DNA of 64,000 nucleotides from Macrostomum lignano (GCA_002269645.1 NIVC01003779.1:13132-77131), one strand, 5' to 3'; positions 16,400 to 53,466 are shown, numbered from the stretch's first letter. The notes: generated from the letters alone by a model not told the origin. A program made the numbers and translations.

Positions 16400-25286
<8,887 letters not shown>

Positions 25287-26574
25287 GTAAGTGCATGACG
25301 GATATTCGATCCTCTCTTCGCTATTAATCTGTTTTCGGAGTAATTTTTTCATGCCAAGCTTTATAAAAGACGCGCGTAATTTCCTGGCCGCAAAGAAGAC
25401 TTCATCCCATTATTTTGGTAAGTTTTTTAACGTAATGACGTATTGCATTTGAAAATGTATCTTAAATCTTTGTACAAAACTTCGACCAAAAGATCTGGTA
25501 GAATCACACTCAACCAGGTAAGATGATTGGTAAGCTGGTGAAGTACATTAAACAATGTAACAGAGTCAACCTTGTATCTTGCGCTAAAACTCTATTTGAA
25601 TATTCTCTGTTCCTTGCGAGTAAATATATTGAAAATGTTATGCCTTTGTTCTAATTCGAAATCAGAACCTTTGTTTTCATTCATTTATTTCTATGCTGTT
25701 TCTCTGAGTAGTGATCAAGTATTTTGAAAGTTTGCGCTAATTCAGAACCATGGACAGCTGAAGTACAAAGTAGAAAGACGGTACAGTTGGCTTTCTTAGA
25801 AATGAGTCTGTGAGGAACGTAGATCGTATATTTGTCGCATCGCTACAGTAGTGAGTTTAGCATTCTTTTGAGGAATTGCATTTCTCTCGACGGAATTTGT
25901 CTATGGAAAAAACCCAATCAGCCCTGTGCGTTCTCAAGAGCCATTACTAAAGACCCTTATTAATTGTAACAAAAAATTTTGCTGCTCACGGAATCGAACC
26001 AACGCCATACCCACTAAGCTGCTCCGAGAGCTATTTAAAATCAAATACTATAGTAATATAACTTATAAATCAGTTAAAAGTTATCAATATAAATATTTCA
26101 GTATATATTTCTGTGTAAGGCAAAGGTGCTACATCGCGGCCGAGCTCATCATGCGCTGCAGACAAAAAATTAAAAAAATTGAAATCAGAGAACCGCCAGG
26201 AAATCACAGCTAGAATTTATCGTCAGCTTGCGAAGCACAATGGAGGAGCAGGGCAGTTTTGAACCGTCTCCTGGAGCTTCACTAATTTTAAAAACTAGAT
26301 TTTGAAAGGTAAAACAAATCTTTTTTGTTTTACTCAACCAACAGTGCCAGGCAACTGAGCTTCGGACTGCAAAAAGGTCACAAGGCACAACATATATGTA
26401 AATATGATAACTGGTTGGCTGATAAACGATAAAATATTGATTAAGGCTTTGTTGGCTGAGTAAAAATCTGCTACGAGTGCGCGGATTAGACAAAAGTGGA
26501 AAAGTCAAATGATTAATTACTGTGTATAACGTTATCAGCCCATCTTTTAACATGAAAACAGTTTTATTGATACT

Positions 26575-27716: not shown

Positions 27717-28631
27717 TCACAGCAGCTGGCAGGCGCGGCTCTTCTGGCCCTGCCCGGCCGGCGCGCTGAATGGCCGCTTCCTGACGCCCGGGGGGCTGCT
27801 GACTCTGCCTTGCCGCGCATCCTTCACGGGTGTCGCCGCCGTCGCAGCCGCCGCCGCCGCAGCGGAGGACGCAGCCGAGGCCGACGGCTCCGGCGACTCG
27901 ACGGCTTCGTCGATGCGGCCGAGGCCAGCGACGGCCAGCTTGCGCTTGGAGCTGGACTGCTCGGCCGCCTCGGCAGCCGCCGATTCAGCAGCGACAGACG
28001 CGACGGCGCCGCTGCCGACCACCGACAACACCTGCGCCAGCAGCTCCTCCTCCTCGTCCTCCGCAGTGTCACCAGCGTCAGCAGCAGGGACGGCCGTGGC
28101 GGCGTCCGCCAGCACGACGGTCCTCGGCTGGCTCTGGTGCTCCGGGCACAGCCAGAGGATTTTCCCTGACGGCAGGTGGCAGCGGCGTAGGCCGGCAGCG
28201 ATGCCCGGGTCCCGGCGGCGCAGGTGCTGGCGCAGCGCCGCGTGCAGCTGACGCAGGTCGGCCTCGGGCCCGGCGCGCTCAGCTGCCGCGCGCAAGTGAT
28301 CGAGCAGGCGGCCGCCGGCCACGGGGTCGGCCGCGGTGTCCAGGCCGGAGCGCCGGCTGTGCCGGAGGACCAGCGCCAGGCGGAGCAGCAGCGGCGCCAG
28401 GCCTCCCAGCAGCTGCAGGGCGGCGTCCCGGCCGAGGCGGAGCGGCAGGCCGGCGCCTGGGGCCGCATGCCAGCCGCCCTCGTGCTCGCAGAGCAGGCGG
28501 AACCGGAACTGGAAGCGGGGCTCGTCTTCGACGCCGTCGTCAGACAGCGGCGGCTCGTCCGCGGCCGCGTCGTCGGCGAAGGCGGCCACGGCGGAGAACT
28601 CGGCCTTGTCCGGGCTGTCGGCCGGGTTGTC
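27717..28631 (-). CDS. Roco gene last exon: CExxxxxH...WLCxxH domain, low-complexity tail, CaaX
   Basis: FRLLCEHEGGWH...GKILWLCPEH; ends KSRACQLL*. The 915-nt exon follows a pyrimidine-rich acceptor (CCGCAG). Confidence 0.85.
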   Translation of the reverse strand, partial: DNPADSPDKAEFSAVAAFADDAAADEPPLSDDGVEDEPRFQFRFRLLCEHEGGWHAAPGAGLPLRLGRDAALQLLGGLAPLLLRLALVLRHSRRSGLDTAADPVAGGRLLDHLRAAAERAGPEADLRQLHAALRQHLRRRDPGIAAGLRRCHLPSGKILWLCPEHQSQPRTVVLADAATAVPAADAGDTAEDEEEELLAQVLSVVGSGAVASVAAESAAAEAAEQSSSKRKLAVAGLGRIDEAVESPEPSASAASSAAAAAAATAATPVKDARQGRVSSPPGVRKRPFSAPAGQGQKSRACQLL

Positions 28632-31600
28632 CTGCGGAGTGGCCGAGACGACAGGGATGATTGGTTGGGAAATTGATGGAGAGCTTGTCAGGCAGACTAA
28701 AACGGTAGATTGGGAAATGGTAGACTGGGAAATGGTAGACTGGGAAATGGTAGACTGGGAAATGGTAGACTGGGAAATGGTAGACTGGGAAATGGTAGAC
28801 TGGAAAATGGTAGACTAGGAAATGGTAGACTGGGAAATGGTAGACTGGGAAATGGTAGACTGGGAAATGGTAGACTGGGAAATGGTAGACTGGGAAATGG
28901 TAGACTGGGAAATGGTAGACTGGGAAATGGTAGACTGGGAAATGGTAGACTGGGAAATGGTAGACTGGAAAATGGTAGACTAGGAAATGGTAGACTGGGA
29001 AATGGTAGACTGGGAAATGGTAGACTGGGAAATGGTAGACTGGGAAATGGTAGACTGGGAAATGGTAGACTGGGAAATGGTAGACTGGGAAATGGTAGAC
29101 TGGGAAATGGTAGACTGGGAAATGGTAGACTGGGAAATGGTAGACTGGGAAATGGTAGACTGGGAAATGGTAGACTGGGAAATGGCAGAGCCTACTCACA
29201 GAGTCAGTATAGATGTCGGCCACGATGAGGCAGGGAAACTGCTCGGCCGTGTCGAGAAATCCGGAGAACTGGCGGTAGACTTTGCGCTGGGCGAGCTCGA
29301 TCAGTTCCTGTAGCCATGTGTGACAGTTTTCCAATTAAGAACAGAAAAAATAACAGTTATTTATTTACTTTCTACTATAAGTAGTTTTTCGGATATCATG
29401 CCGGTTTTCAGTCAGGAGCCGCTGTGCACCCAGTGTGCATGAGTGCGTGTCTGCGTACAACATTGACGCGCTTGTGTGCTCATGTACTGTGACAGTTGTC
29501 ACCGAAGCTGCGTCAGGGCGCCCCCAGCCCTCCAGAAAATCATTATCTCTCCATCATTATCTCGTACTAGATAGGTAACCAGTCAAGAGAAAATGCATCA
29601 CCTGGAACATGGCGCCACCTCCGCCCGGACTGCTCAGGCTGCTTTTGCGCCGCTTGCGGAGACTGTCCTTGCTGTCCGGCCGTTTGATGGGGTAGTACCT
29701 CTCCAGCGTCTCCGTCACCGCGCTCAGCAGAGCGTCGTAGCAGGATTCGCTGGCAGCTTGGAAGTTCACCTTTGGATGACCGAGCGACATCATGCCGATC
29801 TGCCGGGGTTGTCGGTTCGGTAGATTAGATGCTTTTCTCACTAGATTAGATGCTTTTCTCAATGAATTACATGCTTTTAACCATAATCTTACTAGACTAG
29901 ATACCAATCTCACTAGACTAGATACCAATCTCACTAGACTAGATGCCAATCTCACTAGACTAGATACCAATCTCACTAGATAGATATCGATCTCACTAGA
30001 CTAGATACCAATCTCACTAGATAGATACCGATCTCACTAGACTAGACTAGATACCAATCTCACTGGACTCGATGCCAATCTCACTAGATAGATACCTATC
30101 TCACTAGACTAGATACCAATCTCACTAGATAGATACCGATCTCACTAGACTAGACTAGATACCAATCTCACTAGACTAGATGCCAATCTCACTAGACTCG
30201 ATGCCAATCTCACTAGATAGATACCGATCTCACTAGACTAGATACCAATCTCACTGGACTAAATACCAATCTCACTAGACTAGATACCAATCTCACTAGA
30301 CTAGATACCAATCTCACTAGATAGATACCGATCTCACTAGACTAGACTAGATACCAATCTCACTAGACTAGATGCCAATCTCACTAGACTCGATGCCAAT
30401 CTCACTAGATAGATACCTATCTCACTAGACTAGACTAGATACCAATCTCACTAGACTAGATGCCAATCTCACTAGACTCGATGCCAATCTCACTAGATAG
30501 ATACCTATCTCACTAGACTAGATACCAATCTCACTAGATAGATACCGATCTCACTAGACTAGATACCAATCTCACTAGACTAGATGCCAATCTCATTAGA
30601 CTCGATGCCAATCTCACTAGATAGATACCGATCTCACTAGACTAGATACCAATCTCACTGGACTAAATACCAATCTCACTAGACTAGATACCAATCTCAC
30701 TAGACTAGATACCAATCTCACTAGACTAGATACCAATCTCACTAGACTAGATACCAATCTCACTAGACTAGATACCAATCTCACTGGACTAAATACCAAT
30801 CTCACTAGACTAGATACCAATCTCACTAGACTAGATGCTAATCTCACTAGACTCGATGCCAATCTCACTAGACTCGATGCTAATCTCACTAGATTAGATA
30901 CCAATCTCACTAGACTAGATGCTAATCTCACTAGACTCGATGCCAATCTCACTAGACTAGATGCTAATCTCACTAGACTAGATGCTAATCTCACTAGACT
31001 AGATATCAATATCTCTAGATTAGATACCAATCTCACCAGGTTTCAAATTCTTTAGTTTATTTATCTGCGACTGCTTTCAGAATTTATAAAAAACATGAAA
31101 CAACGGATTCGAATTAAAGTGCATCGAATCTCATGTTAAGGAAAAATTTCACATAAGGGTCAGACCAAAGCCAAAAGCAGTTTGGCTGCTTGCGTGTGGG
31201 TGGCTGCCGGGCTGCGATGCGCTGAAAGAAGATTTATGCTAAGCTGGGCCGAGACCCCACTGCAGGGCCACCTGAACTGGGACTGAGTGAAAACCCCGTT
31301 TCATAGTTTCCACTGTCCTGGGAATCGATTTCCGCTTCCTCCTTTCCAGCCACTTTGTATCTTATTTCACCTTTTCCTTACTCCTTTCACTTTTCACTGG
31401 CTCCTCCCTTCTCATTTCTCATCTCACCTGTTCCTCCCTTCTCATTTCTCCTCTCACCTGTTCCTCTCACCTGTTCCTCTCACCTGTTCCTCTCACCTGT
31501 TCCTCTCACCTGTTCCTCTCACTTGTTCCCCTCACCTGTTCCTCCCTTCTCATTTCTCCTCTCACCTGTTCCCCTCACCTGTTCCTCCCTTCTCATTTCT

Positions 31601-34600
31601 CCTCTCACCTGTTCCTCTCACCTGTTCCTCCCTTCTCATTTCTCCTCTCACCTGTTCCCCTCATCTGTTCCTCCCTTCTCATTTCTCCTCTCACCTGTTC
31701 CTCCCTTCTCATTTCTCATCTCACCTGTTCCTCCCTTCTCATTTCTCCTCTCACATGTTCCTCCTCCCTTCACCTCATTTCACTCTCACCTGTTTCTACC
31801 TTCATGTCATTTCTCCTCTCAGCTAAGTTTCTCCCTTCATCTCTGCTCTCATCTCATACCTCAGTTCCCATTCCTTATCTCCCGTTCGAGTTCCAACTGC
31901 CTCCCCAGACTCCGCAGTCGCCCCCGCTCACCTCAGTGGACTCCCACAGCACGCCGGTGCCCACAACGCAGATCACCATGGGCCGGTTGAGCGTCAGGTG
32001 AGCAAAGCGATACTCCATCTGGCAGTTCTTCGATGCCACGTACTGCGATTGGGGAAAAGTTTTTGCACTTTTAGCTTCAGAAAGCATTGCGGATGATTTT
32101 GCAAGCGATATTTTTTGCGCTAATAGGGGCTGCATAAATTCAAAGTGAGCTGCAGAGATTCACAGTGAGCTGCAGAGATTCACAGTGAGCTGCAGAGATT
32201 CACAGTGATCTGCAGAGATTCACAGTGATCTGCAGAGATTCACAGTGATCTGCAGAGATTCACAGTGATCTGCAGAGATTCACAGTGAGCTGCAGAGATT
32301 CACAGTGATCTGCAGAGATTCACAGTGATCTGCAGAGATTCACAGTGATCTGCAGAGATTCACAGTGAGCTGCAGAGATTCACAATGATCTGCAGAGATT
32401 CACAGTGAGCTCTAGAGATTCACAGTGAGCTGCAAATATTTAGAGTGGAATAATACGCTCGTAATCAATAGCACGCATTCTAATGCCCAGTCGCGATCAG
32501 TTCTCACCTCATCGGAGAGGCAGGCCACCACCAGCTTGCAGGCCTTGAGTCCCTGGCAGAGGTCCTCAAACATGCCGTTCTCGCCCAGCCGTTCGATGTC
32601 AATCCAGCAGGAAAGGCCGCCGGCTTCCTCCAGGTGCTTCTTGAGTTTCCGGGGATCGCCGAACCCGATGGAGCGGCTGGTGGCCTTGCCGTGGCCTGCC
32701 TTGACCGCCTCCTGCGAGTTCGCCCAGCAGTAGCTGATGAACACGTCTGCGCGCCCGCTGACCCGCTGCGGGTGAGGTGCGCGATGGGTTGCGATGTGTG
32801 TGATGAGTTGTGTGAGGTGTGCGACGGGCTATGTGAGGTGTGATTGGTTGTTTGAGGTGCGCGATAGGTTGCGATGTGTGTGATGAGTTGTGTGAGGTGT
32901 GCGACGGGCTATGTGAGGTGTGATTGGTTGTTTGAGGTGCGCGATGGGTTGCGATGTGTGTGATGAGTTGTGTGAGGTGTGCGACGGGCTATGTGAGGTG
33001 TGATTGGTTGTTTGAGGTGCGCGATGGGTTGCGATGTGTGTGATGAGTTGTGTGAGGTGTGCGACGGGCTATGTGAGGTGTGATTGGTTGTTTGAGGTGC
33101 GCGATGGGTTGCGATGTGTGTGATGAGTTGTGTGAGGTGTGCGACGGGCTATGTGAGGTGTGATTGGTTGTTTGAGGTGCGTCATGGTTTGTTTGAGGTG
33201 TGTGTGATAGGTTTTGAGGTGTGTGTGTGTGATGGGTTTTGAGGTGTGTGTGATGGGTTTTGAGGTGTGTGATGGGTTTTGAGGTGTGTGTGATGGGTTT
33301 TGAGGTGTGTGATGGGTTTTGAGGTGTGTGTGATGGGTTTTGAGGTGTGTGATGGGTTTTGAGGTGTGTGTGATGGGTTTTGAGGTGTGTGATGGGTTTT
33401 GAGATGTGTGATGGGTTTTGAGGTGTGTGTGATGGATTTTGAGGTGTGTGATGGGTTTTGAGGTGTGTGATGGGTTTTGAGGTGTGTGGTGGGTTTTGAG
33501 GTGATGAGGTGATGGGTTGTGTGAGGTGTGTGATGGGTTGTGTGAGGTGTGTGATGGGTTGTGTGAGGTGTGTGATGAATTTTGAGAACTGTGTGAGGTA
33601 TTGTGCGAGTCACGTACTTCATTGTGTCAGGTGCATGGACTGTAAGGTGTTATTGACTGTGCCGTTTGCAATGAACGGCATGCACAAGAAGGTGACCAGG
33701 GAACTCTTACTCAGGGATTAGTTTGGATCAAGACTCAACACTTTGGCATCAGCGCACACATTATTATTCCCAAAGTCGCGAAGTCTCTCATTACCACCTA
33801 GGCTTGGGATCTCCTTCAACAAAAATGCACGGATGCGGAGCAGTGCAATTATGCCAGCAATTTCGACAGCGTCATCCGCATCTTACCGCTCGGATAAGAA
33901 TCTGATTAATTAGGCGGCAAACACCTCTCCCAGGGGGTGCACTGACCCGCAGATTTTAATAACAATTGCTAGTAAAACACTGGCTTATAAAAATAAGCCA
34001 GTAATATTTTAAAAGTACATCCAGCAGTGTTGTCGAGCTTGCTCATGCTTTTATAATTAGCTCGAAGAAAGTTTGGCAGCAAAAGCGGAATCAGAACAGG
34101 CGGTCAGGCTGACGCAAATCTCCCATGAAGTTGGCGGCTCCCTTTGACCTGAGGAGAACCGCATGATTCAATCAGACAGAAAGGACGAATTCCCTAATTT
34201 CAAGTCCTTAATCCCATCTGAGCCATAAGCCGTCCAGAGCCTTGGTACAGTGCTTCGTTCATTTTCATTAGCCTATTGTGCGTGGTGCATTATGGATGAG
34301 CTGCAAAAGCAATACGACAGTTTGATGTCAGCCTTGAGACTTCAAACAGCTTTAAAGGATTTAAAACTGGATTTTGAGCCGCTGCCAAATCCGACAGATT
34401 AAAGTGCCCAGCTGTTGTCTGGGAGCCCGGCCATTGGCTGTGAAGGACAAGCGAGCCGGGGGCGGATTGGCGGAGGCTGAGGCTTCGCTGAAGTGGATGA
34501 CTAGAAAAATCCATCAGGGCGGAGAGCCGAGAAGGCCAACCAGCGGACTACTCAGGTTCGATTCTCAGCTCCCAGTTCAGTTCAGTGAGAATCAGCTCAG

Positions 34601-37600
34601 CTCAGCAGCGATGCTCGCCTATGTGGCTGTCAACGGCAGCTGCCTGAACGACTCCGGCAGCTCGGAAGGCCCCGCTGGCGGCGCCGCCAACGTCTATTTG
34701 TACATCGCTTGCGTTCTGAGCTACCTGAACGCCCTGACCAACGGTTTCTCCCTCATAGTGTTCATTCTGGACAAGAAAAATGTCATCATGGGCCGCCTGC
34801 TGCTGCTGCTGTCCCTGTCGGAGACTGTGCTGAACATCGGCTTCGCTGTCAACCTCACCGTCATGCTGACCGTGATGGCCGACGCCGGCCGCCAGGCCTT
34901 CGACAGCCCCCTGCGCCCGCAGATGATCACCTGCGCGTTCTTCCTGTCGTTCGCCATCGCCAACGCCTTCATCATGGTGCGCAACTGGAGTCTGGTGATG
35001 ATCGCCGGCAGCCGCTGCGAGGTGGTCAGCAACCCGTTCAGCACCCGGCGTGGCCAGCTGTTCAGCCACAGGCGCAGCCAGGCCTGCTACGCCCTGACGC
35101 TCATCCTGTCGCTGCTGGTGTGCGCGCCCCGGCTGTTTGAGTTCACCTGGACAATTTGCGAGTACCCGGCTGAGAACAACTCAACCGAGACAACCGTCTA
35201 CAGCCTGACAACGGCTACGCACCACATCCTGGACAAGAATCCGTCCTACAGGCACTACAAAACTCTGCTGGTGTTCCCGCTGCAGACCATCGCCCCGATA
35301 TTCCTCATCAGCGGCCTGTCGCTGGTGATCATCTTCATCCTGCGCAGGCGCCGACTGCTGCAGCAGAACAGCGGCGGCAGCGCTGGAAGCGGCAGTGGCC
35401 GCGGCGGCGGCGGCGCCAGCGGCAGCGGCAGCCGCAGCCAGGACGCGGCGACCAAGACCGTCATGATTCTGATGTTCTCGTTCATCATCTGCGAGCTGCC
35501 GACCTTTCTGTTCTTCATTCTGAACCAGACCATCTTCGCCTCGATGCGAGGCTTCAACCAGATCCGCATGCACACCACCTTCTTGGCCAACATCCTGTTG
35601 AGCGCGGACAGCTTCACCAACTTCATCATCTACAGCAGCACCAGCAACACCTTCAGGGAGACGGTGAGGCGGATGCTGCACCTGCCAGACAGACGCCAGG
35701 GCCGCAGCAACAACTACAACTACTACAACAACCACCTGCAGAACAACAACTACAGCATGCTGAGCAGGGAGGCCAACGCGCTGAGGCGGGCGGAGGCCGC
35801 GGCGGCGGCCACCGCTGCCCCATCGCATATCGAGGATGCCGCTCTGGCTCCGCTGAAGTGGCACCCAGGCGGTGCTGACTGAGCCGAGCCGGAGAACCGA
35901 ATCTTGCCGAATCTGAAGTCACTGAATCTTCTGTAGCAAAAGCAGGCGTCTGAGTTGCCCTGCATTGGACAATCAAAGCAAATTTCTTAACTGTATTTGT
36001 TGTGCTCATCATTGTCAATAATAAATAGTGGATTGCTTCATCTAGCGTAGCTCCCGAGTCCGCATCGTTCCTCTTTGATTGCAAGTTTTGAAACTGATTA
36101 TTATTCTTACTAGTTCACCAATTTCCCTTGTTTGATAACCGCAATTTGATCACTTTTACTATATGTTGTGCTCATTTGTCGTTTCCCGCGCGCGTCATTT
36201 GACAATAAGTTTTGTCTTTTCTGTTAAAAAAACAGCAACCATGCTCTATTCTGGTAAGAAGGCCTGACTTTAGGGTCGGCTTCCCTCATTAAAGACAGAA
36301 GATCCTTTGTCCTGCGACAGCAGAAGAATACACTGCAGTGTTAATCCTCATCCTACGCCTGACTTACTGCGTTCTCAGATTTTTACTCGCGCTTATTACA
36401 GGCTATCGCATACGAGCGTATCCGGACTGCCAAGCCGCAACCGCCCGAACTCTGCTAAGCTCAGCAGCTTGTTGCTGCCGCTAAAAGGCTAATGAGAGCC
36501 TGCCGGGCCAGCAGGGATGCCAGTTGCGCCAGAGCTGTCCGACAAACACCCACATGGCTGATTTTACGAGCGCATTTGTTTCGTCCCAGTTGAAGGATCG
36601 GTCTGAGAGGCTGCGCTAAGCTCGCCTGTCTCCGCCGTCTGGTCGGCGGATTCTCCCCGAGATTGGGGGGATTTGTGGGATTCCGGTTGCCCGCGAAGTA
36701 CTATGCTGCTCATGCAAGCCTGAGGCAGCTGGCGCTGACACATAAAAAAAAGCTGGCAATCTTCTGCACGCACCATTTCATAGTTGGCGAGTTGCAGTTA
36801 TGCTTAGCAAAAAACATTCACTAGAGAGTCAGGCGCGGCAAACACAACACACTCGCACATGGTTGCAGGAAATCAGGCAGGCAATTCAACGAGTGATCAG
36901 TTGAAACCGCCCGGCTCACCTCTCGCTTGCCGGCGCCGCTCTTCTCCCTGACGGCGGCCACCGCCTCGGCCAGCTTGGCGTCGAACTGGGCCTCGCGCTG
37001 GAAGTTGATGTACACCAGACCGGACAGGCGGGCGCCCAGCGCTGTCTGCTGCCAGTCCTTGCCGCTGCCGACCAGGCCAAGCACTAGCGGCTTCTTCAGG
37101 TGCTCAGTAGCCAGCGACAGGTACTGAGCGCAGGTGTCCGACAGCACGAACTCGTTGGATATGAGGCACAGGCAGCAGCCTGACTGCTGCAGCAGGGCCA
37201 TGCTGTCCGACAGGCTGCGCTCTTCGGATGTTGCTTCGTCCGACACGCACTGCCTGCTCGGTGTCGGGGCGGCGGGGAAGCAAAATCAGCACTGGTGCTA
37301 AAAGTACACTAGTGCTGCATCGGGCTCCATGTCGCTATCTTGATGCCTATAAGAGTCTGCCACTGAGGTGTCCAACCGCATTGTTGTAAACTAGCTTGTA
37401 CTTAAAAAAGCAGTCGAGGCCAGAGACGAACGAAAGAGTCGGATTTTCCCGCGGTTGTCTTGACGGGCTTGGAAAATGCGGGGCCTCATTTTTAATCCTG
37501 ACGACAGAAAATAGCCGGTCTCGGGGATGCGGCCTGGCTACGGGTGGCTACGCCCAGCACTGATTAAAGAAGCTAGCACCTTGAATCTCTTCTACTCCAA

Positions 37601-40600
37601 GCTTCATTATTTCAGGCCCCGGCCACTCAGCATCCGGCCAGGGTTAGTCCATCATCGGCATCATTAGAGACTGCAGACTCTTCAACTCTGCCGCTTGCTA
37701 TACTCACACAGATAAGCCGGCAGCCTCTTCAACTCTGCCGCTTGCTATACTCACACAGATAAGCCGGCAGCCTCTTCAACTCTGCCGCTTGCTATACTCA
37801 CACAGATAAGCCGGCAGCCTCTTCAACTCTGCCGCTTGCTATACTCACACAGATAAGCCGGCAGCCTCTTCAACTCTGCCGCTTGCTATACTCACACAGA
37901 TAAGCCGGCAGCCTCTTCAACTCTGCCGCTTGCTATACTCACACAGATAAGCTGGCAGCTTCAACTCTGCCGCTTGCTATACTCACACAGATAAGCCGGC
38001 AGCTTCTTCAACTCTGCCGCTTGCTATACTCACACAGATAAGCCGGCAGCTTCTTCAACTCTGCCGCTTGCTATACTCACACAGATAAGCCGGCAGTCTC
38101 CAAGCCAGCCTGGATCTTCTCTATGATGTCCCCGCCGCCGCCGCTCTTGTTGGCGCAGCAGAAGATGAGGGTGACGTCGTGCACGAGGTCCAGCCGGGCC
38201 GCTGACAGGTCGTTCACTGAGCGCTCAAAGTGCAGCTCAAAGTCGGCGGGCGATTCGGGCGGCATCACAGCTGGGAGACGGGAGTGAGGAGGGCGAATGA
38301 GTTTAGCGTGCAACGAGGCAGAAGGTTAAACCGTTTTTGCCTCGCCCCACTTTCTACTATTCATTAAGCCTGGCTACATAAGTCCGCCTCTGCGCCGCTT
38401 CCTGAGATTGGCGATCGGCTTTCCCGTGCGTTTCCCCCAGCTGTCCCGCAGACTGTTATTAGATAGTCGCTGAGCCATGTGCCTGTCGCTTTGTGGAGCA
38501 ATGCCAGGCTATTCTACATGACTGACGCATCTGAGCTGCTTGCCTTATTCAATTATGGCCTTCTATTCCCTACGGTCAGCATAATCCTGCTGAAGTTTCT
38601 GCCTGTCACTCATGGGTGTCCAGCCCCTCTGTGTGCACTGTGGACTGAGTGTCTGACGGTTGTCCAGCCCCAATGCTGAGTATCTGTGTGCACTGTGGAC
38701 TGAGTGTCTGACGGTTGTCCAGCCCCAATGCTGAGCCTCTGTGTACACTGTGGACTGACTGTCTGACGGTTGTCCAGCCCCAATGCTGAGTATCTGTGTG
38801 CACTGTGGACTGACTGTCTGACGGTTGTCCAGCCCCAATGCTGAGTATCTGTGTGCACTGTGGACTGAGTGTCTGACGGTTGTCCAGCCCCAATGCTGAG
38901 TATCTGTGTGCACTGTGGACTGAGTGTCTGACGGTTGTCCAGCCCCAATGCTGAGTATCTGTGTGCACTGTGGACTGAGTGTCTGACGGTTGTCCAGCCC
39001 CAATGCTGAGCCTCTGTGTACACTGTGGACTGAGTGTCTGACGGTTGTCCAGCCCCAATGCTGAGTATCTGTGTGCACTGTGGACTGACTGTCTGACGGT
39101 TGTCCAGCCCCAATGCTGAGTATCTGTGTGCACTGTGGACTGACTGTCTGACGGTTGTCCAGCCCCAATGCTGAGTATCTGTGTGCACTGTGGACTGACT
39201 GTCTGACGGTTGTCCAGCCCCAATGCTGAGCCTCTGTGTGCACTGTGGACTGAGTGTCTGACGGTTGTCCAGCCCCAATGCTGAGTATCTGTGTGCACTG
39301 TGGACTGACTGTCTGACGGTTGTCCAGCCCCAATGCTGAGTATCTGTGTGCACTGTGGACTGACTGTCTGACGGTTGTCCAGCCCCAATGCTGAGCCTCT
39401 GTGTGCACTGTGGACTGAGTGTCTGACGGTTGTCCAGCCCCATTGCTGAGCCTCTGTGTGCACTGTGGACTGAGTGTCTGACGGTTGTCCAGCCCCATTG
39501 CTGAGCCTCTATAAAGCTCAAATTGCAAGAGATCGGGCGGTTTTGCAACTGAATGATAATTAGTGTTTACGCATATTTGCTCTGTTGCTTGTTGCACCTG
39601 CTTGAGTTTTGATGCACCGAAAACTCCAGTTAGGATGCTTTGCTTCGTTATTTCGTTCGTCGCATGATAGAAGCGCGACTGTACCTATGCAGTCCGTCTG
39701 TGCCCACTGCACAGCGCCTAGCAACTAGTGCTTGATAGCAAAGCTTTGTTAGACTTTGTGGATATTTTTAAACCAGTATAGTACAAGAAAAAGTGGCAAA
39801 AAAGCTCCCGGTACCTTGCAGAGTGGGAATCGGCACGCAGTGGAACATGGAATGGCACTGGAGAAACAAGGCCCGCATCTCGATGGCCCTGCGCAGCACC
39901 TGGCTGCTGAACATGGCCGGCTCTTGGATTTTCTGAAATTAAAAAAGCACACAGGTTGATCAGTTTAACCCAAGCGTGCCGGCATGCCACGGCATTCGCT
40001 CACCTGTCTGACGCAGTCAATGCACGGCACCTCGTACACGTAGGAGACCCCGCCGAACGCCTCGGCGATGAGGCCTTCAAACACTTCGTGTATCAGCATC
40101 AGCATGTTCTCGGGAGACGAGCCCTGCACCTTCACTATCACTGTGCGTTCCCTGTGAAATGAAAAACGGGCGATTAGGGAAAATATTTTTGATAATTTTC
40201 TCTCGCAACAAAAAGGCAGCAGGCTGGTATTGGGCACCCAGACGCACCCCTTCTTGACCATGAGGGCCCGGTGGTCGCCCTTGCACAGCAGGGATCCCCG
40301 CTGCCAGATCACCAGGTCGTCGGAGAACTGGCACAATCGCACCTGGGCCCTGTTGAACAGACCAGCCGGCAGGTAGTCGAAGGTGTACTTCATCTTGGCC
40401 TCCTGGATGTCGCCGAGCGCGGTGACGTCGTCCCAATCGAACTGGGGCTTCTTCTGCGGCAGCAGGCAGGGCACAACGCTGACACCGGAGTCGGTGAGCG
40501 GGAAAGTCAAGTCGAAAGTCTCCGTCAGGGTGAGGAGCCAATCGTGCAGCTGGGCCGGGTAGTCCTTCCAGATGGTGTGGATGTCTTCGTGCTTGAACCG

Positions 40601-43600
40601 GCCCTCCTGCGGGTTGGTGTAGGTAACCCTGGTTGGATCCCCGTACCCGGCCAGGCATTGACGCGCTTGTATGTCCTCATTGCTGTAGCCTAGAGGTTAG
40701 AGCGTCGGACTCGCAACTAGAAGGTTGGGGGTTCGATTCCCGATCCCATTGGAACAATTTGTGTCCTTGAGCAAGACACTTTTACTCTGCATTGCTTCAG
40801 TTCACCCAACTGTAAAATGGGTGCCAGCATTACATAAGGTGTGTGCGGCAACCCCCAGTCCTTTGACTGAACAGCCGTATGCAGCTTTCAGATGCGCCGC
40901 GCAATAGCTGCGGCTGAGCTGTCGGTTGCACAACTGGCCCAATTGGGCCAGCTCATTCCTCGCCTGTAGTGGGAAGATGTTACCAAAGGCGAAACGCACT
41001 TTTCTCCACTGATATTCCAACACTGAATAAGGTAGAGAATTGGAGAATTCGGTTGGAGTGGCGCATTTCGCGCCAATTCAAACGCAGTCTTCTGAGTTCA
41101 GAAATCCGGAGGACGGATATGACAGGAGAAAGAGGCTTGGGGGGAGAAGGGCGCCGCTTCCTTGAGTCTAACCTGGAATCAACATCAGGCCAGCTGCTTG
41201 AAATTCCAAAACCAAAGCGCTTACGGGACTAAAAAGGCAGGGAGGGCACGGATGAGGGAAGTGAAATGAGAGGAGAAAGTCCGGACGTTTGTTTGTCATC
41301 CAGTTGGGGAGCCCGTGCTGCTCCTGTTCCCACGGTCGCCGCTCCCAGACTCAATTTCCTCTATGCTGAACAGGTGCCTCAAGACCGCCCCAACTTATAG
41401 AAGTTCGATCCCATGAACAAAATGCTTTTCGTGAAATTCACAGTATTCACGAACACGCCCGACCATCAGACAATCAGGGCTGCTGTGCATCCTGATTGAG
41501 TGTTAACAGCTACTCGACTTTGTGCTCAAGGCTCAACAGCTACTCGGTTTTGTGCTCAAGGCTCAACAGCTACTCGGTTTTGTGCTCAAGGCTCAACAGC
41601 TACTCGACTTTGTGCTCAATGGTCAACAGCTACTCGGTTTTGTGCTCAATGGTCAACAGCTACTCGACTTTGTGCTCAATGGTCAACAGCTACTCGGTTT
41701 TGTGCTCAAGGCTCAACAGCTACTCGACTTTGTGCTCAAGGCTCAACAGCTACTCGGTTTTGTGCTCAAGGCTCAACAGCTACTCGACTTTGTGCTCAAT
41801 GGTCAACAGCTACTCGACTTAGTGCTCAAGGCTCAACAGCTACTCGACTTTGTGCTCAATGGTCAACAGCTACTCGACTTTGTGCTCAAGGCTCAACAGC
41901 TACTCGACTTTGTGCTCAATGGTCAACAGCTACTCGGTTTTGTGCTCAAGGCTCAACAGCTACTCGACTTTGTGCTCAATGGTCAACAGCTACTCGACTT
42001 AGTGCTCAAGGCTCAACAGCTACTCGACTTTGTGCTCAATGGTCAACAGCTACTCGACTTTGTGCTCAAGGCTCAACAGCTACTCGACTTTGTGCTCAAT
42101 GGTCAACAGCTACTCGACTTTGTGCTCAAGGCAGCTACTCGGTTTTGTGCTCAGTGGCCAACGACTACTGTTTCCCTTGATTTGTGGCAGGCCTCATCTT
42201 CCCCCCCCCCCACCCCATTGAAGATACGCGCACCAGCCTACCTTGATCACGTGATTGTGCACGGTGACAACGCAAGCCATCACGTCCACCAGCCACTGCG
42301 GATTGATGATGACAATGTCGTACAGCAAGTCAGAGTCGAAGTGCTGCAGACTGCCCATGTCGTGAAGAAACTGCACAGCTTGCGGCACCTGCCGGAATTG
42401 GAAGAATTAATCCCGCTATCAATCCCACTGTTAATCCCGCAGTTAATCCTGCTGTAAATCCCACTGTTAATCCTGCTGTTGATCCTGCTGTTAATACCGC
42501 TGTTAATCCTGCTGTTAATCCTGCTGCTAATCCTGCTGTTAATCCTGCTGCTAACCCTGCTGTAAATCCTGCTGCTAACCCTGCTGTTAATCCTGCTGCT
42601 AATCCTGCTGTTAATCCTGCTGCTAACCCTGCTGTTAATCCTGCTGCTAACCCTGCTGTTAATCCTGCTGCTAATCCGGCTGTTAATCCTGCTGCTAATT
42701 CCGCTGTTAATCCTGCTGTTAATCCTGCTGTTAATACCGCTGTTAATCCTGCTGCTAATCCTGCTGTTAATCCTGCTGCTAATTCCGCAGTTCAAGCAAG
42801 CATAAAATTGCACCTCTTCGCCGTAAATTCCAGTCTTCTTGCCAAGCTGCATCACTTCGCTCCACTTGAGCAGACTGTTCGAGCTCCGGTTGCTGAAGGA
42901 TGAAAAATGTGTGCTTTTCATTCGGAGGACATGACGGTCAGAAATAGCACTCGCCAATTAGCCACTTACCTGATAATCGCCTTCTCAAAGTTAAGCCAAG
43001 CCTCTGGCACGTGCTCGCCAATGTATGGCTGGCTCAGTGTTGTCTCCAGAATCTGCTTGAGCAGCTGCTCAACTCCCTGTTAATAAGCGGATTAAGTCGC
43101 GAATTTGAAAGAATCGAATTTCGCGTATTTTGTCCACAACTATCTAATTGCCCGAGGTCAGTTTTCGTTCGCCGACTCTCGAAAGACTTTGAACTCCTGA
43201 GCTATCGCTCTGGGGCGTCTGTCTGGGCCTGTCCGCTCCCCTGCCCTCCCGGCGGACCCCGCGATTGCCCCCCCCCCCGAAACCCGAGCGGCACATTTGC
43301 AATTCCGCCGCGCAAATATTTGCCTTCATCAAAGAGCCGATTACAATCTCGCTGCCTCCGGGGATTCAGAGGAGAGTTTCTCTCTCTTTCTCTCTCTCTC
43401 TCTCTGAGTCGGTCCGGCTCAAATCTTCATCGCCAGCTCCAGTTTTATCCTCACAACGACTGTCTGGGCCGTAGCGAGAAAGTAGGAATTACTGACGGAG
43501 ATCTGGCGCCCAGCGACTCGACTCGTCGTTTGAGCGTTTTTACTCGAGTCTGCGCCGATGTTTTATTCATGAGGGGACAATCGGGGACACTTTGACGGAA

Positions 43601-46600: not shown

Positions 46601-49600
46601 GAGCGGAGCAGGGCGCAGGTCAGACAAGAACTATTTTTACATTCTCAGAGAAAGGGTATCGAAGACTGAATTTAAAAAATCAATAGAAAGAAGTTTCAGG
46701 TAAGCCGAAGGTGAAAGCAAAACACTATTCTGTGCAATGCACCTGTTGCTTTACAGTATCAGGTTGTCAATCACTTTCAACCCCGCGTCGCTTCAAAAAT
46801 TCTTCTACGCGTAAAAAAGCACTTGGCATATACAGTACATTCTGACCTCCCAGTACAGTACATTCTGACCTCCCAGTACAGTACATTCTGACCTCCCAGT
46901 ACAGTACATTCTGACCTCCCAGTACAGTACATTCTGACCTCCCAGTACAGTAAATTCTGACCTCCCAGTACAGTACATTCTGACCTCCCAGTATAGTACA
47001 TTCTGACCTCCCAGTACAGTACATTCTGACCTCCCAGTACAGTAAATTCTGACCTCCCAGTACAGTACATTCTGACCTCCCAGTACAGGACAATCTGACC
47101 CCCCAGTACAGGACAATCTGACCTCCCAGTACAGGACAATCTGACCTCCCAGTACAGGACAATCTGACCTCCCAGTACAGGACAATCTAACTTCCCACAC
47201 GACGCTCTGACTTTTACCGGACTCGCAGACCTTCTCAGTGAATTCACAGGCTTTTTAGTAGTTCTCACTGGACGATCTGAAGCATTCAGTTTCCCTCACG
47301 CCTCACCTCTCCGCTCGCTGAGCTGACTGAGAAGAATCCCACAATTCCGGGATATTTATCCTTGAGATCCTGCACTGGCATGTCGAACTTCGCCACCTTG
47401 TCGCAGTGAGTCCCCACAACAAAGATTGGCACGCCGGGAGCGTGGCAGGAGATGCTGTTCATCCAGAAGTCCAGGCCAGCGTGCTCGAAGCCCAGCCGCA
47501 TGTTCCACACCAGCAGGTACACGGCGCGGGCGGTCAGGAAGAACTGGTGCGTGTTGTAGTACAGCGTCTGGCCGGCGAAGTCCCACACGCTGAAGGTGAC
47601 GGACTGGCCTGACCTGTTGATTGTCCATGTGCTGATGTCAATGCCATCCGTGATGGCCTCCAGGCGAATTTGCGGCGCCTTGAAGTCCGGCGACATCAGG
47701 GCTCGCATGAGACTGACGGGGATCGGGGATGGGGCGGGAGCTTATGATCCTTGAGCACCGACTCTGATTCAGGAGGTTTGAAGCAGTAAAGTGACGATTT
47801 GACTGTGGGGGTTTGAAGCAGTGAAGTGACGATTTGACTCTGGGGGTTTGAAGCAGTGAAATGAAGATTGACTCTGGAGGTTTGAAGCAGTGAAGTGACG
47901 TTTTGACTCTGGGGGTTTGAAGCAGTGAAGTGACGATTTGACTCTGGAGGTTTGAAGCAGTGAAGTGACGATTTGACTCTGGGGGTTTGAAGCAGTGAAG
48001 TGACGATTTGACTCTGGGGGTTTGAAGCAGTGAAGTGACGATTTGACTCTGGGGGTTTGAAGCAGTGAAGTGACGATTTGACTCTGGGGGTTTGAAGCAG
48101 TGAAGTGACGATTTGACTCTGGAGGTTTGAAGCAGTGAAGTGACGTTTTGACTCTGGAGGTTTGAAGCAGTGAAATGAAGATTTGACTCTGGAAGTTTGA
48201 AGCAGTGAAGTGACGCTTTGACACTGACTTGAAGAACTTAAGTGACGCTTTAGCTCCAATTTGGGCATGAAGCGTGAGGCTCTGACTCTCGCGTGAAGTT
48301 ACTCGTACAAGCTTCAATAGACGGCAGTGCATTAGTCACAATTCATCAATTCATCAATGAACAATAGATGTAACAATAGATTCCATTTCCAAAGCCGATT
48401 TATTAGTTTCTATTTTTAGAGACACCGAAACTTGCAATCCACTGCAAAGTGCAACGAGTAACCGTTTAGGCCAGTCTCACCTCGTCTTCCCGGCGCCGCC
48501 CAGGCCGACAAACATGAGCTTGGTGCGGTAGCAGGCCACGCTGCCGCTGGCCAGTCGGCGAAGGTAGGCGATGGTGGCCATCATGCCCTGCGCCAGGATC
48601 TCCTGGGGCGGCGTCTTCAGGTTCTCGCAACCCTGCATCGACAGCACTGAGGGTCGGGTACGTAGCGGGGAGTGCAGGTTTGCGATGTGGCTTGCCGCTT
48701 GTGTCTGCCTGACATCTATATCGTATCTATCTTATTCTATCTCATCTTGTCTACGTCTGTCCGGGGTCCAGGATGAATGCATTTATATCCTGTTTATTTG
48801 GCTTCAATTATACTTTATCTGCATCGCATTTATCTGCCCATGCACAGCACGCTTGTAAGTCCAGCCTTGAAAAGACTGGAAAAAACAATCAAACATGGCT
48901 TTTGAAATTGCAACTAGCTTGGCGCTCCTGCAGAAGCCAGATGCTCTGTGAAATCCTCATCTGTACTGTTTGCATTTATACGCTTCCCCCAGCACGCGAT
49001 GTTATTTTATTGTTGCCGAGACGGCCCCGCCTCACTGCGCATCTCCCCGTCCATCTCTACTGTCGAAAGAGTGCATGACAACGCAGGCTCCTCAGCCACC
49101 ATACCTTTTAGTTCCGGCAGGTTGCCCTGGACGCTCTCCAGGTAGAGATTGTTGTCCAGCACAAGGGTCCGGAGCTGCTTGAGGGCCGAGATCTCCTGCG
49201 GCACCCGCCGGATGCCCTGGTTGCTGAGCACCAGCGACTCCAAGCTGCGGCAGCCCAGCAGTTCCATCGGGAACTCGGCCTCACTCGGCCCGCCGCCGTC
49301 CTCAACGCACAGACGAGGCACCACGGCGAACAGCTCGGCTAGGAAGTTCTGCAGCTCCTGCGCCTGCAGGATTTTATCATTGTTAACGTCGTGTCGAGCG
49401 AACAGCTCCTCGCCGATGCCTTTCAGCGCCTTCTGCACCGCGAAGCCGTGGTTGCGGTACTCGGACCAGGCCTTGTAGGACATGATCAGCCCGGCGCCCA
49501 GGCCGCCGCCCCCGCCGCCCGGCTGCGCTGTGCCTGGCTGATCCGCCGGGCCCGCGGAGCCTCTCCGGAGCTGCCCTCGCCGCCGCCCTCGCCGCCACCA

Positions 49601-52600
49601 TCGCCGCCGCCGCCGCCGCCACCGCCGCGACCGCCGCGACTTTTAGACATCTTGGGCAGCGGGACGCCGGACAAGTTGAGCTGCTTGAGCTTCTTTAGCC
49701 GGCCGAATCCGGCTGGCAGGCGCCGGATCAGCGTCTCCTTTAGCAGGAGGTTCGTGAGCGCCGACATGCGGCCAATCTCCTCCGGCAAGCGGTTCAGCTG
49801 CGTCCCGCTGGCGTCCAGCAGCGAAAGCGAAGGCAGGTCGCAGACGAAGGTGGGCAGGTAGCTAATGGGATTGTAGCTCAAGTTGAGAAACTTTAAACGC
49901 TTCAGCCTGCTCAGGCTGGGGTCCAGCTTAGTGATGAAGTTTTCGTGCAACTGCAGATTGATGAGGCCCTCGGACATCTGGCTGAGCCAGCCGGTGTCGC
50001 GCATCTTGCACCGCGACAGCTCCAAGTTGGTGAGGTTGGCCGCCGAGAGCAAAGCGGCGTTGGGGAACGGCTGCGGCAGCACCTGGTTCTTGGCGCGAAT
50101 ATTGCGAAGGCAGTCCACGTGGCGGCCAAGATCATCTTGCGTCAGGACGGTCTTGGCCGCCGTGTGCGAGTCGCAGAGGTCGCGGCTGTGCGAATGTAGC
50201 ATCTGGGCGATGCGCAGCCCGTTGCCGCTGGCGGATTCCGGACGAGCATCCTAGAGGGGTTTTCCACGGGCTTGCCACGGTTAATCCATAAGCTTTGATG
50301 GGATTTTATCGTTAGAAACGTAGGTATGGTTGGTTAAATTTTGGTTAAATATGCAGCAACTCTGCTTACATATCCATAATTTTTGTTCCTAAAGTATTGC
50401 AGTGTCATAGTCTCGCTTCATATTATCGCTTATAGTGTAATGATGTGTCAGTCATAGCGTCTTCGTTCCTGTCATCTCTGTCTGCTGCAGTGCATTTCTT
50501 CGTGTCTTAACTCAAGGAATTACGATTTTTTGTATTTCCTTCAGCGATAAAACAATGTATAGCACAACATTACTTTTAGACGTCATTTTGTCCTCTGAGG
50601 AAGGAACGCGCTGCATAATATGCAACTTTCGACTGCTGGCAAGCAGTGCGTCTGACATTGGAGACCGCCACCAACGGGATTAGTCATAACCCTTCATACC
50701 CTTCATACTCTTCTTAATGCATTGCTACACTCGTATCTGCCCACAATAGCATCTCAGCCCCGGCGAATCACTTCCCCTATACAGGCCCACCTGCCACTTA
50801 CCGCCCTGCCAGATCTGACCCTAGCAACCGGTCCAGTTTTGGCGCATAGGCTGCTCTCCTTGTAGCCGTCCTGTTCCAGCATCCGCTTCAGCAGCAGCTG
50901 ATCTCTGTAGCTGCGCAGCACCGGCCAGATTCCCTGTGTGATCTGCGGGCAGGGGCATCAGTCTAGCTAAGTCTTGGTAATTAAGAGAGGCCGGTGCCAG
51001 CACTGCTTACCTGATTGACGCCCAGTTCGCTGTCGATTCCGGGCAGGTAAGCCAAGTCTGCCTTGGACAGAAAGGACTGCAAATTGGGCGCATTAACAGG
51101 TGTGTAAATAAACAAATACACACATTTATGCCAGTCGCTAGACACAGCAGAGAAAGCAAATTAAGAGTCTCACGGTGAATCGAAGCAGCATTCCAATCAG
51201 ATAGATGAGGTTGGTATCGTAGTGCTTCACTACATATCGGTACTCGTCCTCGGACAGCTCCACTCCCTGCTTGTCCAGCAGGTGCATGTCGCTCGTGTTG
51301 GCGCCTGTTGCGTTCATTGAGAGCGAATTCGGCGATAGAAAATGGGAACTAAGAAGCAATTTGGGAGCAAAAAGAAACAAAAAAGCAAGCCGCGCATTCA
51401 ATCGATTATCGAAGAGCCAAAATTCCGGAGCAACTGGCCAGGCAAATATTGAATAATCAGGCAATCAGGCAGTCGTGCCGGAAAGCCTGGCCTAGGCACA
51501 AGTGCGTTTCGCAGACCGGGGACAGACACTCCCGCCTCCCTGCTGCAGTTCGCAAAGAGAGAGCGACATAAACACTGGGAAAAACAGGCAGCGGAAAAGT
51601 TTACCCGAAAGTCAATCAGACAACGGATTAGCGGCAGGCCTCGCTTTTAGCCAAGCGGACTCCGGCTCGGGCAACCGGCCGCCTAGGGCATCAATGCAAT
51701 CCAGGCTATTAGCCTCAGCTTGTCATGCGAATCAAAACAAGAAGCGATGGGATTATAGAAATTCCCCAAGCGAGCCGGAGCCACATGAGGCGGGAGAAGC
51801 ATCTGCCGTTAAGCTTGATATTGACGTCACAGCGCGAGACATCAGCGGGAGCTCAAGCTCTCCAATCCCCAAATGGAGAACTGTTGAGCACTGTAGCACA
51901 AATTTAAACCGACAACTATGAGGCATCTTACGTCTCAAATAGCAGTCAGCATGCTTTGAGGACCTGAAGTCAACCATCATATCTCTCGTATTTACCATAT
52001 GAGCCGTTTAAGTCTATGGCCCACCCGCCTTTAATCTGCACGAACTCGCGCCCGAATATGAATTATGGCCACATTCATTAATCTACCACTCGCCTAGCCG
52101 GAAATCAAAGGGCAAAGGAGGTTTATTATGGGCAGACTTCTCGAGCAGCCGCAGCCGCAGCCGCAGCCGCAGCCGCAGCCGCAGCCGCAGCCGCAGCCGC
52201 AGCAACCGCAGAAGCGCCAGTCGACCAGCAGTCGCCAGCCCGTTCCAGCGGCAAAGCAGTCGAACAATGTGGGCTCAGAAGCGAACTGGCTAGACTCAGT
52301 CAGCACTTTCTCGGTGCCCGAGAAGTTGCTCCGCTTCGCGGCGACCATCCCTCAGGCGCCACCGTCCCGGCTGGCTTCTGCGCCGCCGCCACCGCTGCAG
52401 CTGCTTCCAGCCGGCGGTTTCATGTGCGAGTACCGCAACGGCGCCGCCGATGTGCGCGAGTTCTTCGCCCACCTCGGCTGGCCGCAGCTGCTGCCGAGGC
52501 CCAGCGAGAAAATGTGCGGCGGCGGCAGCGGCAGCAGCGTAGCCAAAAGCGTCGGTACCTGTGGCCCAGCCAACCGGCAGTGGAGCTGCGTCTGCGTGCA

Positions 52601-53423
52601 GTCCGCCCTCGCGGCCATGCCCGACTTCGCTTTCTTCTGGGGCAACCTGTCGTCCAGCACATATGCCCTGTGCATGGCGGCCAGCCAGCAGCGCCACAGG
52701 CCGATGGTGATGAACCGCATTCCCTGGGTGACGTTGATCAGCAACAAAAGCCAGCTGGCCGTCACCTGCATGGCGCACAAGCACTCCAGCACCAGCCTCT
52801 GCCTGCAGAGCCACATACCGGCTACATTCATCGTTGATCGAGACACAGACCGGAGCTCTCTGCCGGCGCTGGCCCGGCGCCTTCTGGCCATGCACCCGGT
52901 GTGGATAGTGAAGCCGCACAACTACGCAAAGGGCGAAGGAATTCAGTTGGCATTTCGCGAGGACGGCGAGGCAGCGATGCTGCGCAGCCTGTCCAGCGAC
53001 CGCTGGGGCATCGGCAAGGTGGTGCAGTGCTACATGACCGACCCCATGCTGCTCAGCGGCAAGAAGTTCGACTTGCGCGTCTTCCTACTCCTAGTAACCA
53101 CCGGCTCAGGGCTGCTGGCGTTCTACCACACCGGCTACGTGCGGCTGGCGCTGAATGACTTTCTGGTCTGCGACAAGCAGCGCCTGGACACGCACCTCAC
53201 CAACCAGGCAGTGCAGGCCAAACAGTCTGGCTACGAGGCTAACAAGGAGGACACCATCTGGACGGTGCAGCAGATGAACAGCTACCTCAACCAGCTGCCG
53301 AGCAGCGAATTCGGCAACGACTGGACGATCAGGGAGCTGCATCCGAAGGTCAAGTTGCTCGTGGCCGCCCTGGTTGAGGCGCTGGCGCAGCGGGTGCAGA
53401 AGGACCGGCGCAACAGCAGCGGC

Positions 53424-53466
<43 letters not shown>

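Follow-up and report, generated by a model that had tools for sequence, protein, structure and literature searches.

A ROCO protein gene of the flatworm Macrostomum lignano with tandem TIR domains, of which the second keeps the catalytic-type glutamate

The window analysed here, a stretch of 64,000 nucleotides from Macrostomum lignano (GCA_002269645.1, NIVC01003779.1:13132-77131), carries on its minus strand one multi-exon gene of ~22 kb (~50202-27720) that encodes two TIR domains, referred to below as TIR1 and TIR2. The order of domains along the predicted product is LRR, EF-hand-like loop, LRR, Roc, COR-A, COR-B, TIR1, TIR2, a conserved C-terminal domain and a CaaX end. An original prediction for the span 29602-38270, which takes in TIR1, TIR2 and the first exon past the TIR2 core, had described TIR1 as catalytically dead and TIR2 as an NAD+-cleaving enzyme under the control of the Roc GTPase. 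Exon mapping by tblastn and Pfam confirm that the tandem TIRs lie directly after a Roc-COR module in one and the same protein.

The two peptides on which the claim was built are both encoded on the minus strand. ISNEFVLSDTCAQYLSLA, from TIR1, is contiguous at 37162-37109, and LSDEYVASKNCQMEYRFA, from TIR2, is spliced across a 465-bp intron, with LSDE closing one exon at 32508 (donor GT) and YVASKNC opening the next at 32042 (acceptor CAG). This splice had been placed correctly, since A0A1I8IUS2, an M. lignano protein in UniProt that matches the locus at ~99% identity in a protein search, has exactly the same junction. TIR1 is spread over two exons: the first (38083..38268), located by tblastn, Pfam TIR_2 and an AlphaFold2 (AF2) model, encodes a conserved pre-TIR helix, strand A (DVTLIF) and helix A, and the second (36920..37249) holds ISNEFVLSDTCAQYLSLA. 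TIR2 likewise has an exon (32508..32765) that runs from FISYCW (strand A) through DPR and WIDIERLGENGMFED (strand B and BB loop) to ACLSDE, followed by one (31932..32042) that begins with YVASKNCQMEYRFAH. The Pfam TIR_2 profile (PF13676, gathering score 28 bits), against which the original prediction had proposed to check both domains, recognises each of them above this score (TIR1, 34.7 bits, E-value 2.9e-8; TIR2, 50.2 bits, E-value 4.6e-13). The AF2 model of the didomain shows flavodoxin-like TIR folds with alternating strands and helices in both halves, the predicted local distance difference test (pLDDT) being ~90 in the cores and 81.7 on average. Foldseek matched this model to the TIR domains of SARM1, TLR1, MyD88, TRR-2 and MAL, the matches to SARM1 having a template modelling score of ~0.66, normalised to the target.

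The residue that sets the two domains apart lies in helix C. Because MAFFT displaced helix C of SARM1 by four residues, owing to the insertion in SARM1, TLR4 and AbTIR were chosen as anchors for the glutamate column. The TIR2 glutamate is E1134 (codon 32015-32013), which aligns with TLR4 E750 and AbTIR E208, and the same column of TIR1 holds a tyrosine, Y971 (codon 37123-37121). The alignment finds no glutamate in TIR1 and puts that of TIR2 in the catalytic column, and the difference between the domains holds in the TLR4/AbTIR-anchored alignments as well as in the family counts given below. Further features retained by TIR2 are a Ser-Tyr in strand A, an Asp that follows strand B (the position of SARM1 D594) and a BB loop, IDIERLGENGMFED, that resembles that of SARM1, IDVEKLEAGKFED. 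TIR1 has lost these features, being without the Asp at the D594 position and having a BB loop 2-3 residues shorter. In SARM1 these positions, the Asp and the BB loop, matter for activity (Loring et al., 2021). As far as can be read from sequence, TIR2 carries the marks of a catalytic TIR. Searches of the PDB with single sequences gave marginal matches only, with MyD88 first for TIR2 (E-value 0.23, aligning SDDYLQSKECDFQTKFA with MyD88 SDEYVASKNCQMEYRFA) and no meaningful match for TIR1, so that family profiles were needed; the PDB matches of the TIR2 profile include TLR6 and TLR1, which have the same glutamate.

To place this difference in its family, relatives were drawn from word-indexed and exhaustive hidden Markov model (HMM) searches, yielding 62 TIR1 and 68 TIR2 domains, and each set was aligned to its own profile. 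The glutamate column of TIR2 holds Glu in all 68 relatives. The corresponding column of TIR1 holds Leu (19), Val (16), Ile (13), Met (4), Ala (3), one each of Thr, Phe and Ser, Glu in two cases and Tyr in one, the latter being the window protein, which is alone in this respect among the 62. Glutamate never occurs in TIR1 of the ROCO-type relatives, which have Leu, Val, Ile, Met, Ala, Thr, Phe or Ser instead, and both TIR1 domains that do carry it belong to Tudor-TIR-TIR-Tudor proteins, which are not of the ROCO type. The alignment of TIR1 has no invariant column and that of TIR2 has 17; mean pairwise identity is 28% for TIR1 versus 47% for TIR2, and of the 1324 protein pairs, 99% have the higher identity in TIR2. 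Judged by these alignments, TIR1 evolves much faster than TIR2. The gap between the two domains amounts to 1-14 residues in the relatives checked. An Asn stands four residues before the Glu in TIR2 of 54 of the 68 relatives; the missing Trp of a ‘WxxxE’ motif was considered as a mark against catalysis and dropped, as the active TIRs of Latimeria, Clupea and Adineta have Asn or Ser at this position.

The same core is found in amphioxus, molluscs, annelids, a nemertean and rotifers, and it lies on single proteins in Dimorphilus, Branchiostoma and scallops. On this comparative evidence the pairing of one TIR with the glutamate and one without it is a stable family character and not a local accident, and it dates back to the bilaterian ancestor or beyond. 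The Tudor-TIR-TIR-Tudor proteins (P0040 and P0041) have the same two TIR types, abutting and with the glutamate in both (CRQEF and CRIEL). They differ from the window protein in being without the ROCO module and the C-terminal domain, and may stand near the ancestral tandem state.

The remainder of the gene was assembled from an exon chain mapped from ~50200 down to 27720 by tblastn with rotifer and mollusc relatives, and the resulting model has a length of 1567 aa. Its provisional start is the first Met of the open frame in the 49630..50202 exon and is a candidate 5' end only. All 17 modelled exons are open, and every junction read by hand has GT-AG sites and compatible phases, with a single exception. 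Where the first LRR exon joins the EF-hand exon, a frame change is needed within a GGN-rich tract (49640-49489) that offers 26 candidate short introns, none distinguishable from the others; either an assembly indel or a short intron would account for it. The region holds no long open reading frames (ORFs) of bacterial type. Nearly every intron of the gene (window 27000-51000) contains a long tandem array; the periods range from 12 to 86 bp, copy numbers reach 54, and these arrays give rise to spurious repeat-peptide ORFs on both strands. One such minisatellite sits in the intron between the two Roc exons. Another, of 47 bp (37673-38100, 9.2 copies, 97% matches), starts within the last codons of the first TIR1 exon and copies the donor GTGAGT of this exon ~9 times, which creates a series of alternative donors.

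The N-terminal exon (49630..50202, minus strand, as are all exons of the gene) encodes LRRs matched by Pfam LRR_8, LRR_4 and LRR_14 at residues 54-180 of the model. The following exon (49106..49489), found by tblastn to mollusc ROCO proteins, encodes further LRRs and an EF-hand-like loop, DVNNDKILQAQE (49390-49355), that separates the two LRR blocks. Mollusc ROCO proteins keep this loop in tblastn alignments (DVNKNGMLDEEE and DDNANGILEEEE), and the Pfam scan of the model reported no EF-hand at E ≤ 0.01. The Roc GTPase (47307..48644) is encoded by two exons, 48644-48483 and 47711-47307, and is recognised by Pfam at residues 396-513 (E-value 1.7e-21); its G1 (GLGGAGKT), G3 (DFAGQ) and G4 (THCD) motifs, read from the exons, are intact. 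Six exons (43076-42972, 42891-42814, 42388-42242, 40606-40250, 40150-40004 and 39932-39816), whose splice junctions were read, encode COR-A and COR-B (39816..43076), matched by Pfam at residues 568-704 (E-value 3.2e-31) and 725-862 (E-value 5.3e-27), respectively. The scan of the model also returned TIR_2 in two stretches (E-value 2.7e-19, 70.3 bits). Matches of the Roc-COR part among PDB entries are to M. barkeri Roco2, LRRK2 and C. tepidum Roco, with E-values down to 6e-37. By domain order and motifs the window protein is a ROCO protein, with Roc followed directly by COR, and is predicted to bind nucleotide. Akin to other ROCO proteins (LRRK2, the C. tepidum and M. barkeri Roco proteins and MFHAS1), it combines LRR, Roc and COR and keeps the G1, G3 and G4 motifs intact, and it differs from them in having a TIR pair as output domain, where LRRK2 has a kinase and MFHAS1 none. 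The name ‘MFHAS1’ attached to an amphioxus relative is the database's own label only. Between the LRRs and the TIRs lies Roc-COR and no transmembrane helix of the TLR type, the sole hydrophobic window in this part (residues 631-649) being a conserved element of the COR-A core. The protein is predicted to be cytosolic, and it is probably prenylated.

Behind TIR2 the protein continues with a basic linker, a conserved domain, a low-complexity tail and the sequence KSRACQLL followed by the stop codon. Two exons past the TIR2 core (29200..29799; 29799-29602 and 29307-29200), identified by tblastn to relative P0024 and by alignment, encode the last helix of TIR2, the basic linker and the first conserved helix of the C-terminal domain (ELIELAQRKVYRQF). 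The last exon (27720..28631), supported by alignments and by the 294 representatives of the domain, encodes the C-terminal domain, the low-complexity tail and the CaaX end. In the window protein this domain has the motifs LCEHEGGWH and GKILWLCPEH (model residues 1228-1470, window 28631-27720), which correspond to the family motifs LCEHEEGWH and GKILWLC..H; QEL.ELTQRKFL is a third motif of the family, which has an invariant set of Cys, Glu, His and Cys. A word-indexed search with the domain returned just five proteins and an exhaustive HMM search 294 representatives at 50% identity, with named members from Branchiostoma (labelled MFHAS1, with MBT repeats), scallops, abalone, clam, snail, the nemertean Tubulanus and the annelid Dimorphilus. 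In each of the five long relatives scanned, which are LRR-Roc-COR-TIR-TIR proteins of 1100-3300 residues, the domain comes after TIR2. The Pfam scan of the model matched the domain to no family, and its AF2 model (pLDDT 73) has no significant fold neighbour in the PDB (best E-value 0.78); the invariant Cys/Glu/His/Cys set may form a zinc site. The UniProt name ‘DNA_mis_repair domain-containing’ carried by two fragments is unsupported by the Pfam scans. KSRACQLL lies at 27731-27720 and the stop codon at 27719-27717. As an ending of the form xS[RQK]AC-aaX is common to 14 relatives and the window protein, we take 27720 to be the true 3' end and predict that the protein is prenylated. A0A1I8IUS2 instead runs on from DARQGR into downstream exons (21630-25218) that are antisense to a plus-strand gene, and the 3' end of this public model is probably erroneous.

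The invertebrate LRR-Roc-COR-TIR-TIR proteins to which the window protein belongs are probably those classed as ecTIR-DC 14 (Gerdol et al., 2017). In the Aplysia immunome (PMC9334734), LRR-Roc-COR-TIR proteins with an EF-hand or MBT repeats were named ‘TLRs with ROCO domains’ and a novel TIR pathway coupled to a GTPase was proposed, and Trichoplax LRR-TIR proteins of ~3000 aa without a transmembrane segment were placed in class ecTIR-DC 14 II (Kamm et al., 2019; PMC6321704). The relatives Dimorphilus A0A7I8VYT1, Branchiostoma A0A8J9W0R3 and Aplysia LOC101845043 (EF-hand) and LOC101848126 (MBT) have in common with the window protein the order of the core and the confinement of the glutamate to one TIR. 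The window protein differs from them by a shorter N-terminus, as modelled (1567 versus 2000-3300 aa), by the absence of MBT repeats and by Tyr in TIR1, where Leu, Val or Ile is usual. We thus describe a new flatworm member, with a corrected gene model, of a family that is already catalogued.

A recent preprint (Hurieva et al., 2026; doi 10.64898/2026.04.20.719644) assigned the residue at the catalytic position in ~16,000 eukaryotic TIRs by structural alignment and expressed 154 Glu-bearing TIRs in E. coli, with three cyclic ADP-ribose (cADPR) isomers and NAD+ depletion as the only readouts. Its Table S4 includes two orthologues of the window TIR2, namely those of Dimorphilus A0A7I8VYT1 (number 137; 56% identity) and Rotaria A0A818LFL5 (number 136; 47% identity), and marks the Glu of the NC..E motif as catalytic in both (E1833 in Dimorphilus). 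The Dimorphilus protein is our relative P0099 and has the full ROCO-TIR-TIR architecture; the cluster of its TIR2 is represented by Trichoplax B3S268_2. For the partner TIRs, Table S3 gives LEU for A0A7I8VYT1_2 (Dimorphilus) and MET for R7TDS1_1 (Capitella), and GLU for both TIRs of Trichoplax B3S268, so that the glutamate asymmetry is already contained in public tables, without discussion there. According to the legend of Fig. 3 in the same work, proteins whose TIRs produce cADPR have domains that include Roc, COR and LRR. In that screen cADPR was made by Adineta A0A814VN55, Clupea A0A6P8EVF3, Latimeria H2ZXV5 and human TLR4. The first three are the active TIRs nearest to TIR2, with TIR2 profile scores of 61 (Adineta), 48 (Clupea) and 39 bits (Latimeria), compared to 11 for SARM1, and all four have the helix-C motif S/N-C-x-x-E-[FL]-x-[FY]-A in common with TIR2. 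They differ in being single TIRs in other architectures, and from the two tested members of the TIR2 family in being active.

In light of these scores, the choice of SARM1 as reference in the original prediction was a loose one, as SARM1 is a distant relative at 11 bits compared to 61 for the active Adineta TIR. SARM1 and TIR2 are alike in the TIR fold, the helix-C Glu, the strand-A Ser-Tyr, the Asp after strand B and the BB loop. Their sequence relation is weak (profile E-value 0.2 against the PDB), TIR2 has Asn where SARM1 has Trp four residues before the Glu, and the window protein is without ARM and SAM domains (Pfam finds LRR, Roc, COR and TIR only), its regulatory module being a ROCO GTPase and not an ARM domain that senses nicotinamide mononucleotide (NMN) and NAD. 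A different parallel is offered by plants, where RPS4/RRS1 and the asymmetric TIR pairs of the RPP1 and ROQ1 resistosomes combine a competent TIR with a non-catalytic partner, and where active sites arise only in asymmetric TIR:TIR assemblies. The TIRs of the window protein are fused in one chain with a ROCO GTPase, whereas the plant pairs go with an NB-ARC/STAND ATPase.

These comparisons suggest a GTPase-gated TIR signalling protein at the membrane, in which TIR2 would be catalytic and TIR1 a non-catalytic partner, and we favour this reading tentatively, at somewhat less than an even chance. An input would work through the LRR/EF-hand part and the nucleotide state of Roc-COR, and the change of state would alter the self-association of the protein at the membrane and thereby gather rigidly linked TIR1-TIR2 units. 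TIR2 would then serve as the catalytic centre that converts NAD+ into a cADPR-type or other ADP-ribose (ADPR)-derived signal, or that depletes NAD+, and TIR1 as a structural partner providing one side of the asymmetric TIR:TIR contact needed by active TIR assemblies. The original idea of an active/pseudo TIR pair stands in part: a dead TIR1 and a competent TIR2 are what the residues predict, and the glutamate is necessary, though not sufficient, for activity. Several observations weigh against the scheme. Table S4 of Hurieva et al. (2026) leaves the ‘Active’ entry blank for both orthologous TIR2 domains, with neither a cADPR isomer nor NAD+ depletion on record, which is weak evidence, as the known NADases RUN1 and RPP1 are blank in the same table. 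Several TLR TIRs have the same glutamate without known activity, TLR2 being negative in that table. The AF2 didomain model does not fix the orientation of TIR1 relative to TIR2 (predicted template modelling score 0.52, no confident packing), and the short and variable BB loop of TIR1 would not suit a BB-loop donor. Finally, it is solely the order of the domains that suggests control of the TIRs by Roc.

If TIR2 is active, the protein would join the ROCO GTPase class, which includes LRRK2, to animal TIR nucleotide signalling. The fusion of a dead and a live TIR would moreover offer a natural system for the question of how asymmetric TIR pairs build an active site, and M. lignano is amenable to RNA interference and transgenesis.

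The main rival to a catalytic TIR2 holds that both TIRs are scaffold adaptors only, as in MyD88 and most TLRs, which would assemble a cooperative TIR signalosome in which the glutamate has a structural or interface role and no NAD+ chemistry takes place. Such a role is in keeping with MyD88 as first hit of the single-sequence PDB search, with the presence of the glutamate in TLR6 and TLR1, with the inactivity of the two orthologous domains in E. coli and with earlier surveys that class such proteins as putative adaptors or regulators. Yet all 68 TIR2 domains, which come from different phyla, carry the glutamate along with the catalytic-type Asp, Ser-Tyr and BB loop, TIRs nearer to TIR2 than those of MyD88 and the TLRs make cADPR, and the screen that returned the negatives also missed RUN1 and RPP1. 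A pure scaffold moreover leaves unexplained why catalytic-type residues are lost from TIR1 and retained in TIR2, and we therefore regard it as possible but on the whole unlikely.

A stricter form of the catalytic reading, which we consider doubtful and less probable still, would make TIR1 a pseudoenzyme obligately paired with the enzyme TIR2 in the same molecule, the TIR2 site being formed only with TIR1 packed against it and being switched by the nucleotide or dimer state of a membrane-anchored Roc-COR. If true, this would account for the inactivity of the isolated TIR2 domains of the two orthologues, would provide plant TNL and bacterial STAND-TIR immune switches with a counterpart in animals that an LRRK2-type GTPase drives, and would give the Cys/His C-terminal domain a place as receiver or regulator in cis.

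TIR2 might also be an enzyme of another chemistry, producing an ADPR conjugate, performing base exchange or acting as a 2',3'-cyclic nucleotide monophosphate synthetase as reported in plant TIRs. The published screen, in which the Glu-intact orthologues were negative, covered three cADPR isomers and NAD+ depletion only, and the C-terminal domain with its invariant Cys/Glu/His/Cys set, which always follows TIR2, could bind or process a product. On the other hand, the nearest active relatives make ordinary cADPR, and the C-terminal domain has no recognisable nucleotide-binding fold, both of which render this explanation improbable. That the locus is a decaying or mis-assembled copy, the TIR1 Tyr being a degeneration of this copy only, would fit the minisatellite-filled introns, the frame change at the GGN tract and the uniqueness of the Tyr among 62 relatives, but is very improbable given 17 open exons with canonical GT-AG sites at all junctions bar one, good scores for all domains, an intact and conserved CaaX end and the absence of the glutamate from TIR1 of every ROCO-type relative as well.

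Two further coding regions were noted on the plus strand of the window. The gene at 21139-25327, to which the downstream exons of A0A1I8IUS2 are antisense, encodes repeated Cys-rich modules of ~150 aa that are rich in N-glycosylation motifs, followed by a mucin-like PPDTTSD tail, and by these features its product looks like a secreted or surface protein. On the other side of the TIR gene, a 543-aa ORF at 52128-53759 shows motifs resembling those of tubulin-tyrosine ligases (FDLRVFLLL and LLGLDVLVDSAGKPWLIEANADPAL) together with poly-Q and PQ tracts.

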